A stretch of 64,000 nucleotides of DNA from the NCBI GenBank assembly GCA_016748015.1, contig JAAOMT010000375.1, positions 306,019 to 370,018 of the forward strand, given 5' to 3'. The notes under the pieces are model-generated. The model had not been told where the DNA came from, made no database searches, and saw only the letters and a program-made list of their open reading frames with translations. The translations under genes were made by a program, and so were the position numbers. Below are positions 6,476 to 64,000 of this stretch, piece by piece (the stretch's first letter is position 1; each line of letters begins with the position of its first letter). The DNA comes from Geosiphon pyriformis uo1. Taxonomy: Eukaryota; Fungi; Glomeromycota.

Positions 6476-7101
6476 TTATCCTCTCCAAAAAGATTGAGCT
6501 CCAGCAAAATCAAGCTATTTATAGGGTATTCTAATTGAAGGGTTTTGTTTAACTCAAAACTAACTAGTTTGTTGAAGTCTTTTGTGAATAGAGTGTATAG
6601 TACTTGAGGCGAAATAAGCTTTGTATTCAAGAGACCAAATCTTTATATAAGAGTTTTGGCTTTTCTTGTAATGGTCAAAACTCTTGGGATATCTAAACGT
6701 ATAATACCCAAAATTTCCACTTGTATCTCTGAAGTTGTTTTCTTCATGAGCTTCATTTCTTCTATGATTTCACCAAGACAATTATAGAGTTTTAGTTGTC
6801 TTCTATATGACAAGTTTTTGTCTATAGGCAAGATTTCCTTAATCATTTTTTCAATTGTCATGGAAGGTGTAAGTATTGCTGCTGTTATGCTTTCCAGCAA
6901 ATACTTATCTATTTTGCTACCAATTTTTTCTCTTCTGGTAGTGGTTTTTTTTGGTCTAATAACAGTATGTGTTCTACTGTTATCAGTTATGGTGGTTTGT
7001 TTTCCAATAGTTAGAGTAGCATTTGGATAATTTTTGATCTAGTACTCATAGAGAGTGTAGAAAGCGTTTTGAATGTTTTGATCTAGGAAATAATTGTTCA
7101 T
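6445..7101 (-). pseudogene. Family A accessory ORF3 downstream of integrase (about 218 aa, two in-frame stops)
   Basis: ATG at 7101 (MNNYFLDQNIQ) is in frame with track ORFs 6643-6900 and 6445-6630; homologues in A2 (about 45150-45800) and A3 (about 24280-24900). Confidence 0.7.
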
Positions 7102-11182: not shown

Positions 11183-12726
11183 GGCTGATAAACAGTGGCT
11201 TCAACTAGGGGATCCTCTCCAAAGAAATTGATGTTGGCATGATTGGGTCTTTGATTGGGGACATTGTTGTTGTTGTTGGGTCTGTTGTTTTGGTTGTCAT
11301 TGTTTCTGGGAGCTGGAGGAGACAGTAGAGAATTGTTGCAATCTCTGGAGAAATGTTCAGTTAATCCACATCTATAACACACAGGAAGGCCACAATTTTG
11401 CTGTCTTTGGTAAGAAGGTTGCTGGGGCTGATTAAAACGGTTTTCAAATCTGGGTCTTTGTGATTGCTGGTTATCTCTGACTGCTTGGGCTAATGGTTCT
11501 AATAGCCAAGCAAAATTTGCTGTAAGTCTATCTATTAATTGTTTATTTGGATCTTGTGTCTGAGCAGCAAAAGAAGTAGCAGCCATTTGAGAAGTAGGAG
11601 CCATAACAGAAGCAGGAGCAAAAACTGGAAGTGTGGATCCCAAATGCATTCTTTGATTGTCTTCAATTCTTTGGGCAAGTTCAATGGCCATATCTATGGT
11701 GGGATTATCTTTTAAAACCAAAAGAGGCCAAAGAGCATACGATAAATCAGTTTTCAATCCTTTTGTAAAGGAGTGGATCTTTTGCTCTTCAGTCCAGTTT
11801 CTACCAGAGTCTACACGCTTGATGAGTTTTCTGATTGCTTTGGCATATTTGGTCACAATTTCACCAGAACCTTGGGTTTTTTTTTCTAATTCCATACGTC
11901 ATTTGGATATTAAGATGGGGGTTCTGAATTTGTTTTCAAACCAGGTAGTAAAAGAGGTGTTGTTTTCTCCAATATTTGCTGGGGTCCATTTAACAATTCT
12001 TTGTTGAACACCAGCATTGGTTTCTTGTGAAAACCAGGTAGCAGGGAAGCCTTGGAGATAGCCACCAACAATTTGGAACTTGTATTTATCATTATACTGG
12101 TTTGCAGTGGCTGCTCTTTTAAAATCATCCAACCATTCAATTGGATCTTGGGCATCACCTCTGAATAGAAGTAGTAGAGTGTTGTTTCTTTGTCCCAAAG
12201 CAGTTTGTATGCCTTGGAGAGCGGCCAGGATGTTTACTTGCATTGGATCTTGGGCCATTGATTCAGAAGTTACTGTTTGTGTGGAGTGCTCTGATTTACT
12301 TAAGAAGAGATCAAAAATAGGGGCTGTTTGGTAGCTTTCTTCTTCTGTTTCAAGGAAAGTTATTGTTGATTGATGGGCAGCAATCCAAATGTGGATTTGA
12401 TGATTCAGATATTCGAAATCAGGGGGCTGTTGTTCAAAGATTGTAGAATATAAGAACTAATTGATACTGTTGTTTTTTTTTTCAAAGTTATCTTCAAAAT
12501 AAGCTTGATCAAAGTAATAGGTTGTATAAGTTGTGTAGGTTTTAGCTGAATGCTTATTTAGAAACCAGTTTCAAAAGTCTTAGAATTGTCTGCTAGATTG
12601 TTCTTCAATGGGAAAGCAGATCAAACAGGAGAGCAGAGGATTAAGTTCAATGAAATCTAGGTTGTTTCTGTTGTGTGCTGCAAAGTGTTCTTCTGATTGC
12701 TGTGGCAGATATGAGTAATCACCCAT
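11170..12726 (-). pseudogene. gag: A1 gag (retrotransposon capsid domain, CCHC knuckle)
   Basis: FRGDAQDPIEWLDDF capsid-like motif and CYRCGLTEHFSRDC zinc knuckle; ATG at 12726 is equivalent to the A2 ATG at 51414. Confidence 0.88.
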
Positions 12727-12778
12727 ACAATGAGGGAATAAGTGAATTTTGACAACCTCACAAGGAGCATCACTTTTA

Positions 12779-13398
12779 TGTTATGGATGGGAGTAACAAG
12801 CTAATGGATAGCAAGGGAGAACAGGATTATAGGGTGATGGAAATAATCAAAGGGGATTCAACTTCAATAAGCGAATTGAATGAGTATGGATTCAATGTGC
12901 GAAATCAGTCTCATAAAATATCTCAGTTGCTATTCTTTTCAAAAAGTAACAAGGGAATCTGAAGGTAAAGGGATAGTCTGTACTGTCAACAATTGATTAC
13001 TGCTGGTATTAATTCTATGCCTTCACGTCAGCACTCTTAGAATTCAATATCAGGTATCAACTTGTGTTCTTCAGTCATGTTTATACAAATAGTCTTCAAA
13101 TACTACAATTATTCAAACAGAAAAAGGCCAACAAGTAATCTTTTATTCTAAGATGTTTGAATACTTGAAGGTAGGGAAAGAGAAATTAGTGATAAGAGAG
13201 TGATTGAGATGAAAGTTGTTATTTTTATTTATTTGATTCTTGTCTGAGAGATGATTTTCTACAGCTAAGAGACTTATCGCTTATATAGCTATTGAAAGTA
13301 GTCAATAATTACTATCTAAAAATAGAGTGGCTAATTATATGACATCAGTGGCTAATACATGTGATAACTAATAAAAATTATGGATTTCAACTGTAACA
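12779..13398 (-). repeat. 5' LTR of A1
   Basis: TG..CA ends, direct repeat of 5832-6475, PBS adjacent. Confidence 0.93.
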
Positions 13399-59158: not shown

Positions 59159-59279
59159 TGTTGTTCTGATTAGTCTGAGTAGCTAATCACATGTGAAAAA
59201 TGCATGATTCACACCTAGTTTAGATTACTTAGTTGATGTATTGTACTAGATAATGTTTGGATCTCACTCATTAAAATAC

Positions 59280-60057
59280 AAAAAAAAAAAAATCACATAA
59301 ATTATAATTAATTGTATTTATATAATTTGGAATTACAATAATATAATAATCAAATATTATGTTATTAAAATGTTATTTTTACTTTATATAGATACATTTT
59401 ATTTAAAAATAGTGTTAAATGGTTAATTCATGTAATAAAACTAATTATAATATATTATGTGGCTAATAAATCAACTAATATAGTTAAATAACAAAATAAA
59501 TTTAAATTTTAACCCATTTGATTATTATATCTAAACATGAAAATATTCACACATAGTTTATGTACATTGATGCACACAGAAAATCGTGTTTTGTGTGCAG
59601 GTTATGAAGAAAGTTTTCAGATTCGCGTCCTAGATTTTCAATTTCCACAGGCTTCTTCNNNNNNNNNNNNNNNNNNNNAAAAAAAAAAAAATCACATAAA
59701 TTATAATTAATTGTATTTATATAATTTGGAATTACAATAATATAATAATCAAATATTATGTTATTAAAATGTTATTTTTACTTTATATAGATACATTTTA
59801 TTTAAAAATAGTGTTAAATGGTTAATTCATGTAATAAAACTAATTATAATATATTATGTGGCTAATAAATCAACTAATATAGTTAAATAACAAAATAAAT
59901 TTAAATTTTAACCCATTTGATTATTATATCTAAACATGAAAATATTCACACATAGTTTATGTACATTGATGCACACAGAAAATCGTGTTTTGTGTGCAGG
60001 TTATGAAGAAAGTTTTCAGATTCGCGTCCTAGATTTTCAATTTCCACAGGCTTCTTC
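59280..60057. other. Assembly gap (20 N, 59659-59678) flanked by an identical duplication of about 379 bp
   Basis: 59280-59658 reads identical to 59679-60057. Confidence 0.92.
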
Positions 60058-60080
60058 ACTTTTTCAAATCATTTCGCAAA

Positions 60081-61800
60081 ATGTCAATAACGTTGTACAT
60101 TCAAAAAGTTATTGGATTTTCAATAACATATTATCTAGGTGGTGTTTTCATCACTCTTGTAATTATTAAACTTCAAAAACTTTTTGTTAAAACGCGAGAC
60201 AAGTCTTTAAAACCTGAATACGTGTACGAATATGACGAAACGCTAATAGTTAAAAATGAGGTGTTGGAGAAGCCAAAAGAAATAGTAACCTCACAATGTA
60301 TGGCAATTATTCTATTTTCAAAACCTTTTGAATACGTTACTCCAACGCAATTTAAGAGTTCAGTGATAAAACAAGTAAAGAAAGCTAGTGTAGGTCCTTA
60401 CGTCCTCGAGAAATTACATGGACACTTTCTTCGAGCTAGCCTTGGTATTAAGAAAGAGTCACCCTTGAAAGGAAATTTCTTTTCTGAAGCCATTTTCGAG
60501 TTTAAGCCTCCTTATGTGTTGAGTCGCGCCACCACCTCTCTTTTAACATCAACCTCTTGGCAACTTCTCAAAAAAACCGCAGCTGTTCCAAACAAACGGG
60601 CTGAACAGCCAAATATTGCACCGATCTGCAGATCTACAATCAAAATGATATCAACCAAGGAAAAATGTTGGGTTCTAAGAATTGATCTAGGATCTGGTGT
60701 TATACTTCACTTAAAAATAGGCACTTTAATAGAAGAAATCACTTCGAAGATTATCGACAAAGATGAACAATCTATTCGCGTTTATTGCTTACTTGGAGAA
60801 ATATGGGATCAAATCAAGAATACTCAATTTCCTTTAGAGTTATTGACCGTTTCAAAACAGAACTTCACAATGCAATCAATAGCCAATATGCTTTTTAATT
60901 ATATCAGACAATCAACCCTAATTGATGCCATGAATATTCCTGCCGCAAAGATCAAAATCACATTGAACACCTATGAAATCAAGCATGGCTTAAGAAATCC
61001 CGAGACAAAACTTATTTGTAGAACTCTAAGAAAAGAAAACATCATGGATAATCAATTTTGTCATGAGCTTGAGCAGTTATTAAGCTTCACTGATTTTTGG
61101 AATATTCCTATCCTAAAACCTCCAAAGACAAATGTTTTTAGCCCTCAAAAAATACCTTTGGCTGGTCCCCGCGATAATCTTATCAACAAAATTATTTTAA
61201 ACATCGACAAGAAAGGCTTCCTATATCATGATCCAAAAAAATTATTAGAGACAAATATCTTTGATGACAGGGACGATGATGGTGTCAAAGAATTACCTCA
61301 TGATTTATATCAGGAATCAAAATTTGTTCAACAACCCGATCCTAATAATCAAGTAGAGCTTGAGGATGAGAAACTGTCCTTATTCGGACAGGACTCGAAA
61401 TATACATGCATTAATCACCTAACATCCGAGCCCAGCGAGAATGATGATTCAGATATTAATGAATTGTGTTTTAATGGTCCCAATGCTGCAGCTTCTTCTC
61501 GTCATGATGCAGGCTATGAGAAATTTTTGGAACAGGCTGCCGAGCTCAGAATTACAGAAGAAGGTCAGTATTTAAATTTTTTTTTGTCAACCTTAACGGT
61601 TTTAGCTTTTATTTTATTTCATAATATTTATCATATAATCTTCTTCTTCTTATTCTTCACCGTGCTTAGAAGAACCTAATATATCGGACAGCAAAGCCGC
61701 CAGAATGAGGCTTGCAGCTCATCGCCTTGCAAAAACACTTGGATGGGATTGGGACGGGACAAGAGTTGAACCTGAAGATGGAAACAATTGGAACAATTAA
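60081..61800 (+). CDS. Two-exon hypothetical protein of about 537 aa with an N-terminal hydrophobic segment (exons 60081-61563 and 61670-61800)
   Basis: Long intact CpG-retaining ORF; GTCAGT donor at 61564, pyrimidine tract and TAG acceptor at 61669; exon 2 is open in phase (EEPNISDSKAARMRLAAH...NNWNN*). Confidence 0.75.
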
Positions 61801-61836: not shown

Positions 61837-62720
61837 CTTGAGATGTGTATTTTACTTTTTGGTAATTTCTAGTAGTCGGAGCTAAAATACAGCACGATGA
61901 TAATAATAAAAACTTATTAAGAGATAACCACCACGATCGTATATAGTATTTTGTTTCCAACTTCGGTAAGGTGTGTTAACGTAAGATTACTTTATATAAA
62001 CTTGGAAAATATTTTATTTTATAATTAAACTAGAATAAATAATAAAAAAACCTCACTTGTTAAAGCAATAAAATAAATAAATGAATAAAACAAAATTTGT
62101 TAAAATTACTATTCTGATTTTTGAATATACATATTTGGATTTTTAAAATAAAAATCCTTTTACTCATTTAACAAATAAACTTAAAAAACAACTTTTTTTT
62201 TGTGATAGTATTATTTCAAATAACACAAAATATCAAATAATTTTTATTAATAAAAATAGAATAATAAAACCCCCCCCCCCCCAAGAAAAAAAAATTTGAT
62301 ATGTTTTGAAAAAGCAAGGATTGTGAATATTTGGCTTATTATGATATTGCACTTTGTACATTTAATTCTGAAAGACCAACATGTTGTCCATTTCAAATTC
62401 TTTGATTCTCAATCAAACTTATATCTTAAAAATCATATCTTCAAAAAATAATTGACATTTGTGTATTTTTATCTGTGAATTGAACTTTAATGTATTAATT
62501 GCAATTATACAGTGTGTTACAAAAAAAATTAGACAAAAATACACATCACAAACTTAATACAGTTTAACCAATTTTAGTTAGTCTGTGGTGGTTAAATTAG
62601 GAAGTGAATGCTAAGATAAGTGGCTAAATATGATAAATTTTTTTCACGTATTTTACTATGGTGCAAACCATTTGGGGCGTGCTGCAACAAAGCCAGACAA
62701 AGTGAACATGTGACGTCACA

Positions 62721-63854
62721 TTATTTTACGTTTGAATAGACTTTTTTCTTCAGAACAAATACTAGTATTAATGCCGTTACGGCCATAGTTACGAACACGG
62801 TAGGAATTAACCAAAGTGGGGAAATTCGGCCGATTGATTCTTTTACTTCCGCACTGGCTCTGAGAGCTGCTACTTCTTGCTCTTTAGCAGCTACGTCTTT
62901 TCGCAAGCGGTCTAATTCTTGGCTTCTGTCTTTTTTTCCCCAGATTTTAGCGTATTCTTCAGGGTCTCTTAGTTTCAGAGCAATTCTGTCTACTTCGATA
63001 GCTCCCAACGGCTTGTTGTTTTTGACAGGTTTATTTGAAGGTATATACCATCGATGAGTTTTATACTTCGGAAATAAGTTAACTATCAATTCCTTCTCAT
63101 CCGGAAAATCACAATCAGAAGAGAATTCTGCTTCCTCTCGAGCCATTTTGGCAGCTTCTTTAAACCTGATTACCACATTAAAATCCCGACAATCAGTATT
63201 CGCTTCAATTTTAGCCATTAACTCTTTGAGCATTTGCCCGATTTCATTTCAAGTTTCTTGATCCAGAGCTTGAATGTCGTTGGGGAGGTGGGCTTTGGTG
63301 GAAATAGCAATGTTTCCTACTGGATGTTCTTTAAAAACTGTGGGTATACACTTTAGGTCATTCTGTAATTTAGCTACTGTTTTACTTTTTTCAACGATGG
63401 TTCTGTTTTGGTCGGGTTTCATTGCCTCTTCAAATTTTTTTATTCCAGATACGGGTAATTCATCAGACTTTACGCTTATCGGTACCGATACCATGCCTCA
63501 ATCTTTTTTGTATTTAGGTACTAAATGAAGTTGAAAATGAGGAGGCTGGTCTTGAGCACCTTCTTTTCCAATTGGTATAGCAATTACATATCCTGGCGGA
63601 GAATATTTAGATTCTAACCTTTTAACATTATCTTGCAAAATCGGCAAAAGATCATTCCACGCTTGCATGGTTATCGTTCTTAAGTCAATGCTATGTTCCT
63701 TCGTTGTTAAAGTAATATGGCCTTTTGTTCCAAAACGAATGCTAACAAAAGAAAAAACTTCTCCAAAATCAGAGACTAAGTTCTTAATCATCCCTTTTTT
63801 GTAAGGAAAAGAATGGTTGATGCAGGTCATACATGGCTTTTTTTCTTCTGACAT
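62721..63854 (-). CDS. Tandem HIT-fold protein with coiled-coil and C-terminal transmembrane anchor; 377 aa under genetic code 4 (TGA=Trp), broken in three under the standard code
   Basis: Three track ORFs are in one frame, separated only by TGA at 63498-63500 and 63249-63251. HIT features: CMTC, KGH..TKEH, PHFQLHLVPKY. No introns; ends in TAA. Confidence 0.8.
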
Positions 63855-64000
63855 AGTAAATAAATTTTTAATAGGACTATAAGAACGGATATCGCATTTT
63901 GAATCATAATCATTTTTGGAAAAGGCACATGTTTTCCTAAGCAATTATTAAATCAAAATTGTTTTGTCGTTCGTGGTAATCATTTTACTTATTCATTAGC

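Follow-up and report, generated by a model that had tools for sequence, protein, structure and literature searches.

An endobacterial-type gene in genetic code 4 as cargo of a Sola1-type transposon at a nuclear site of Geosiphon pyriformis

We analysed a 64,000-nt stretch of DNA (the window) at the end of contig C601 of the 128-Mb Geosiphon pyriformis assembly. Close to its right end lies a gene that needs TGA to be read as Trp (code 4) and that is cargo of a many-copy, Sola1-type cut-and-paste DNA transposon, placed between the end of the transposase gene and a terminal repeat. Sequence comparison supports assigning the gene to the type found in Mollicutes-related endobacteria (MRE), with its nearest relatives in Mollicutes-type chromosomes. 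The window copy resides in the nucleus: it is joined to nuclear DNA, and RNA over it has been processed by the spliceosome. We consider it probable that the transposon captured an MRE chromosomal gene and carried it along when inserting into a Geosiphon chromosome, the transposase presumably being translated in the MRE and delivered to nuclei together with the element. Coordinates are collected in Table 1.

Table 1. Features of the window and of related bacterial loci
Feature	Position	Strand	Remarks
MRE-type tandem-HIT gene, transposon cargo	62721..63854	-	377 codons in code 4; CxxC, two HIT-fold domains, coiled coil, C-terminal membrane anchor
HIT domain 1	63507..63785	-	PF01230, 27 bits (cut-off 21.5); motif H-F-Q-L-H
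TGA codon 119	63498..63500	-	12 homologues: W in 6, Y/F in 4, R in 2
TGA codon 202	63249..63251	-	W in 12/12 homologues
Terminal inverted repeat	62674..62707	+	33/34 to commonest form
ATTT target-site side, AWWT type	62670..62673	+	partner beyond contig end
Transposase, last three codons and stop (DUF7869, Sola type)	63989..64000	-	92% identity over 71 bp to C702 copy; contig end
Spliced antisense RNA over cargo gene	62800..63878	+	two studies
Antisense RNA intron 1, GT-AG, 78 nt	63041..63118	+	X2/X3 runs
Antisense RNA intron 2, GT-AG, 109 nt	63340..63448	+	X2/X3 runs
706 bp identical to start of contig C643	63295..64000	-	sequence comparison
Many-copy nuclear repeat beside insertion	62506..62658	.	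outside element
Neighbouring nuclear ORF with spliced intron	60081..61790	+	outside element
-1 frame-change run	L125:10770-10840; L127:8770-8840; L128:3775-3850		transposase of bacterial copies

A tandem-HIT gene of endobacterial type

The first-pass annotation of this DNA had proposed one minus-strand frame interrupted only by two TGA codons and closed by TAA. Indeed, 63854-62721 is a single frame with two TGA, four TGG and a final TAA, and neither TAA/TAG nor a frameshift occurs within its 377 codons. We searched 1.8 billion proteins without a profile, using stop-free pieces of the gene, and searched again from the best full-length match; this yielded a family of 300-500-aa proteins. With X at both TGAs, the window protein was 41-44% identical over its full length to P0090, P0071, P0002 and P0088. 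Of the two TGAs, the annotation had singled out the second as a Trp site, and codon 202 does align with W in every homologue; its expectation of Trp at both sites held only in part at codon 119, where half of the homologues have W and ten of the 12 have W or another aromatic residue. The gene thus has TGA at conserved Trp positions and no other internal stop, as expected under code 4. The internal repeat on which that proposal drew is real: the sequence shows it weakly (23% over 86 columns, E 4e-4), the fold predicted for a homologue clearly.

In the predicted model of P0090 (pLDDT 75), two HIT folds are accompanied by a long helix and, at the terminus, by a hydrophobic one; the model resembles GalT and Hint structures, with E-values of 1e-8 to 1e-4. 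Together with the PF01230 match above its cut-off, it places the window protein in the HIT superfamily. The motif of HIT domain 1 lacks the catalytic second His (close homologues have H-F-Y-M-R), and no His motif was found in HIT domain 2. Neither the Hint/Fhit hydrolase motif H-x-H-x-H-x-x, with its nucleophilic second His, nor the GalT/Apa2 motif H-x-H-x-Q is present in the window protein. Compared with the HIT superfamily (Hint/Fhit and the tandem GalT, Apa2 branch), it has the same two HIT folds per chain, but is devoid of the catalytic His and adds a C-terminal coiled coil and a membrane anchor. In MRE, the product is most likely a pseudo-dimer that is anchored in the membrane and would bind nucleotides without hydrolysing them.

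Gene neighbourhoods identify the contigs of the homologues as code-4 bacterial DNA, the neighbours being nusB, gatB/gidA, an amidase gene with three TGA and no TGG, and parA/pemK. Since the family lies beside such housekeeping genes and a transposase was found in none of the six bacterial HIT loci checked, it is chromosomal in MRE. While its closest relatives are on code-4 contigs, a more distant member is present in the named MRE genome GCA_031674855.1, and HIT-family matches read through TGA in five genomes of that genome's family. These relationships agree with the MRE origin, with TGA as Trp, that the annotation had put forward: the closest full-length relatives are chromosomal genes of code-4 endobacteria. 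It had also allowed for an ordinary fungal pseudogene in which two TGG had decayed to TGA, a kind of decay that is common in the nearby retroelements. We give this reading practically no credence, as the uninterrupted frame speaks against it, a paralogue (C669) carries 15 TGA in a 413-codon frame, and the nearest full-length homologues, being bacterial code-4 genes and not fungal TGG genes, already refute it. A mitochondrial origin was rejected because the relatives adjoin bacterial housekeeping genes. As a separate observation, two adjoining tandem-HIT paralogues lie beside a PemK toxin gene on a code-4 contig (L122:273-2456), an instance of HIT family expansion in MRE mobile regions.

The transposon and its nuclear site

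Although the annotation had recorded the gene, it contained neither the transposon end nor the transposase tail that flank it. The 34-bp terminal repeat starts 13 bp past the stop of the gene and has 64 matches in the assembly, compared with none in a reversed control; the transposase tail is 135 bp upstream of the gene. The C702 copy has the same order, namely transposase, short spacer, HIT gene and terminal repeat. Of the window copy, the assembly holds one end only, the left end lying beyond the assembled contig. The 34-bp matches pair as inverted ends of elements of 0.4-8.6 kb, and matching 4-bp AWWT duplications were present in five of six two-ended elements checked (ATTT in C633; ATAT in C648, C669, L124 and L125), whereas the 4-bp flanks of L123 do not match. 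The relatives therefore have the terminal inverted repeats and 4-bp AWWT duplication of Sola1, and the window copy has ATTT at its one end. The transposase matches DUF7869 with 52 bits and contains the motifs YSYDW, CDNAGGQNKN and GHTKFKCD, which we tentatively assign to Sola transposases.

Sola1 DNA transposons were reportedly described by Bao et al. in 2009. The AWWT duplication is cited as a hallmark of Sola1 in PMC3845634, and Sola1 has been reported from Rhizophagus (PMC5751038). Our element resembles Sola1 in its terminal inverted repeats starting with G and its 4-bp AWWT duplication, and may do so in its DUF7869 transposase of ~590 aa, which is putatively Asp-based, but differs in that the transposase is in code 4, the cargo is both bacterial and fungal, and relatives occur in bacterial chromosomes. 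Elements are usually laid out as terminal repeat, fungal cargo in the standard code (kinase-like, Crinkler), transposase, cargo in code 4 and terminal repeat, and related proteins are annotated in assemblies of Gigaspora, Ambispora, Diversispora, Racocetra and Dentiscutata. No tRNA gene was found in any element, which gives no support to a suppressor encoded by the element; scans for promoters and terminators stayed at chance level. Many elements also have a conserved ORF of ~100 codons without TGA directly upstream of the transposase (for example L039:3652-3960, L115:2056-2391 and L014:7850-8064), for which no Pfam family was found. Two pairs of terminal repeats in the Geosiphon assembly, 0.4-0.5 kb apart (C348:37692-38112 and C718:2169520-2170058), are miniature non-autonomous derivatives.

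Nuclear residence of the gene, inferred by the annotation, is supported by reads of two kinds. A contig assembled separately from a DNA run (X1) covers 62619-64000 and 155 bases beyond; it includes 55 bases outside the terminal repeat and so bridges flank, end and gene, although X1 may underlie the submitted assembly, which makes this an independent assembly and not an independent sample. The repeat at 62549-62619 is not crossed by any one contig, so it is from the submitted assembly that nearness to the gene at 61.8 kb is taken. Two further runs from two studies (X2 and X3) behave as RNA, since the intron of the neighbouring gene (61564-61669), correctly predicted by the annotation as intron-bearing, is spliced in them. 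The same runs contain the antisense RNA with two introns over the cargo gene, and in X2 the antisense RNA over the HIT region was assembled in spliced form only. Such spliceosomal processing places the underlying DNA in the nucleus. When exons were checked one by one, the antisense RNA had no long ORF. Because translation in the standard code would stop at codon 119 and the RNA is antisense, the gene is probably dead cargo in the nucleus, and nothing indicates that the HIT protein is produced by the fungus.

A chimeric assembly of MRE and fungal reads, the other alternative that had been raised, would be in keeping with the position of the gene at a contig end, with the recurrence of 706 bp at another contig end and with the link between element and gene at 61.8 kb occurring in no single contig; MRE-fungal chimeric assemblies are documented (PMC11423566). 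We nevertheless regard it as highly improbable in view of the separately assembled DNA contig, the two GT-AG introns seen in two studies and the dozens of decayed copies with duplications. Furthermore, no code-4 TyrRS or TrpRS is present in the assembly, which argues that no MRE chromosome was mixed in wholesale. In C643, the HIT gene runs on into a retrotransposon relic, and this junction was also found in an RNA-type run.

As the annotation had noted, CpG is retained in the region: the observed/expected ratio is 0.85 in the gene and ~0.8-0.9 across 60-64 kb, compared with 0-0.35 in the remaining window. Searches of Pfam and the Atlas found no family for the neighbouring ORF. A second spliced antisense RNA in the CpG-rich island has three GT-AG minus-strand introns at 61026-61418, antisense to a 532-codon plus-strand ORF. 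The CpG-poor part (7000-58800) is filled with decayed Ty3/Gypsy-type and LINE-type retroelements. A 20-N gap at 59660-59679, between two copies of a ~390-bp stretch (59270-60060), is likely a scaffolding artefact.

Across the assembly we counted 23 loci of the HIT family, 19 of them tied to the element by a terminal repeat, transposase or other element gene within a few kb; most paralogues were examined as 3.3-kb loci. We built a tree with bacterial homologues, in which decayed copies were read with X at stops and context was checked for six of the bacterial rows. Here the 13 element-borne copies require six changes, at least four of them forced by strong branches, and form a single clade in none of 200 bootstrap trees, while the window copy pairs with the chromosomal P0090 (support 100/99). 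Since the element-borne copies do not form one clade, the MRE HIT gene family was likely captured by the element several times. A soil contig also contains a transposase and a HIT gene, the latter 92% identical in DNA to the C669 copy. Of the endosymbiont-to-nucleus transfer that the annotation had proposed, the MRE origin therefore stands, but not the notion of a lone stretch of endosymbiont DNA, the gene being transposon cargo from a family captured repeatedly; "recent" applies only relative to the decayed copies.

Code-4 transposases and their relatives in bacterial chromosomes

A metagenome scan retrieved 80 transposase loci with 79-92% identity. Full-length frames have ~580-610 codons, each needs 2-6 TGA, and none has lost all of them. 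TGA clusters in five Trp columns that have TGG in other copies (TGA/TGG counts of 30/13, 15/31, 19/27, 42/4 and 25/21 in 48 transposases), and median dN/dS values under code 4 are 0.09-0.14. At the level of sequence, this shows a transposase that treats TGA and TGG as synonyms under purifying selection. One subfamily from soil (L055, L060, L070, L080, L092, L099 and L104) has a CpG observed/expected ratio of ~0.08 and GC3 of ~0.18, with an intact code-4 transposase under purifying selection; a purely bacterial life would not explain it unless its MRE methylate CpG.

Members of the transposon family also appear as insertions in MRE chromosomes of two unrelated samples, as contig sequences show. 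In the first (L125/L127), a 5.8-kb element carrying AIG1-type genes lies between PNPase and TyrRS on a 162-kb code-4 contig, with both ends (24/34 to the nuclear repeat) and an ATAT duplication; this sample also holds nuclear copies beside fungal genes. In the second (L128/L129), the transposase follows rplP and only the left end was found, a candidate right end in L128 having been rejected for its position within a helicase gene and its missing GGG start. The bacterial copies form a distant subfamily, ~53% identical to the nuclear one, and all of them have a -1 frame change at the same A9-A10-TTT run, where nuclear-type copies are in frame. The run suggests a candidate site of regulated or programmed slippage, by analogy with insertion sequences. 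Neither the transposase nor a HIT homologue gave a match when scanned against GTDB, and no close bacterial copy was found in five family-level and 401 order-level genomes around the MRE genome, a search that had no positive control. A bacterial copy of the cargo-carrying nuclear subfamily was likewise not found in GTDB or these MRE-related genomes.

The existence of bacterial copies and the decay of many nuclear ones could also reflect a one-way leak, in which the element is active only in MRE and nuclear copies are DNA fragments passively repaired into chromosomes. This is very unlikely, given that nuclear copies carry fungal cargo and are delimited precisely by the terminal repeat, flanked by 4-bp duplications and not by bacterial sequence, as is characteristic of insertion by a transposase; the duplications already largely refute it.

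Proposed traffic between endobacterium and nucleus

According to the capture and co-insertion that we favour, the transposase would be translated in the endobacterium, the only code-4 compartment that supplies cargo, and elements would collect bacterial genes there. The excised element and enzyme would then reach host nuclei in the shared cytoplasm, and family copies in nuclear DNA do have AWWT duplications. Fungal cargo would be gained in the nucleus and may return when MRE take up host DNA. Several observations count against this explanation: elements with intact code-4 transposases carry standard-code fungal kinase and Crinkler genes; wherever their flanks can be read, they lie in DNA of fungal appearance; one subfamily has stayed intact despite strong CpG depletion, as would fit a long stay in the nucleus under selection; and the bacterial copies are distant and have the frame change, none of those found belonging to the cargo-carrying nuclear subfamily. 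A more far-reaching version, for and against which we see the case as evenly balanced, is a two-way shuttle between nucleus and endobacteria: a eukaryotic transposon would be translated only in the bacterium, insert in both genomes, and bring bacterial genes to the nucleus and fungal kinase and Crinkler genes to the bacterium, in several host genera.

Nuclear readthrough is the main rival, though we deem it unlikely. It assumes the same origin of the cargo, but the element would now spread from nuclear copies, the fungus would read UGA as Trp at low level (through near-cognate readthrough, editing or a tRNA leaked from MRE), and code 4 would be a relic of an earlier MRE stay. In its favour are intact transposases under purifying selection in fungal-looking and in CpG-depleted contexts, the intron-type fungal cargo and the failure to find a close bacterial copy. 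It is, however, hard to reconcile with the retention of 2-6 TGA in every full-length transposase though TGG is freely available, with elements that lack a tRNA, and with the bacterial insertions; the repeated uptake of different MRE genes would moreover need repeated MRE passage. If it were true, selective decoding of UGA by these fungi would likewise be a novelty.

Nuclear insertions of endosymbiont or organelle DNA are known as nuwts and NUMTs. Our case is similar in that a symbiont-code gene is stranded, probably dead, in the nucleus, but those are random fragments, whereas here there are precise terminal repeat ends and target duplications. Pack-MULEs and bacterial composite transposons likewise carry captured genes between their ends, but the cargo of our element has its sources in two domains of life, with two genetic codes. 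Reports on MRE (Ca. Moeniiplasma) and their Mucoromycota hosts describe gene exchange mainly in the fungus-to-MRE direction, without naming a vehicle (PMC10507103, PMC13315312); the partners are the same, and kinase and AIG1-type genes take part there too, while the transfer here is bacterium-to-nucleus, repeated and with transposition footprints. We found no published description of the element in the literature searched: papers on MRE transfer and on chimeras contain no transposon, and a survey of AMF transposons does not mention Sola. What is new are the insertions in MRE chromosomes of two samples, the finding that the HIT cargo has several origins, and the evidence from reads at the window site.

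The element is a known kind of transposon with an unusual two-domain life, and suggests a vehicle by which DNA may travel between symbiont and host. MRE-fungus gene exchange is documented but no mechanism is known for it, and a transposon with footprints in both genomes is a concrete, testable candidate; the insertion of DNA into host chromosomes would here be the work of a bacterial enzyme. In practice, code-4 DNA in such fungal assemblies cannot simply be filtered out as contamination, and the element provides a basis from which to develop genetic tools for fungi and bacteria that lack them.

Two further observations concern individual elements. The nuclear copy L124 has inverted ends of 492 bp (6610-7101 and 12692-13183) that are 100% identical, so this copy is very young. 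L108 is an element in GC-rich DNA with a different fungal cargo and the flanks of L123 and L124 have 43-53% GC, which suggests hosts outside Glomeromycotina for all three.
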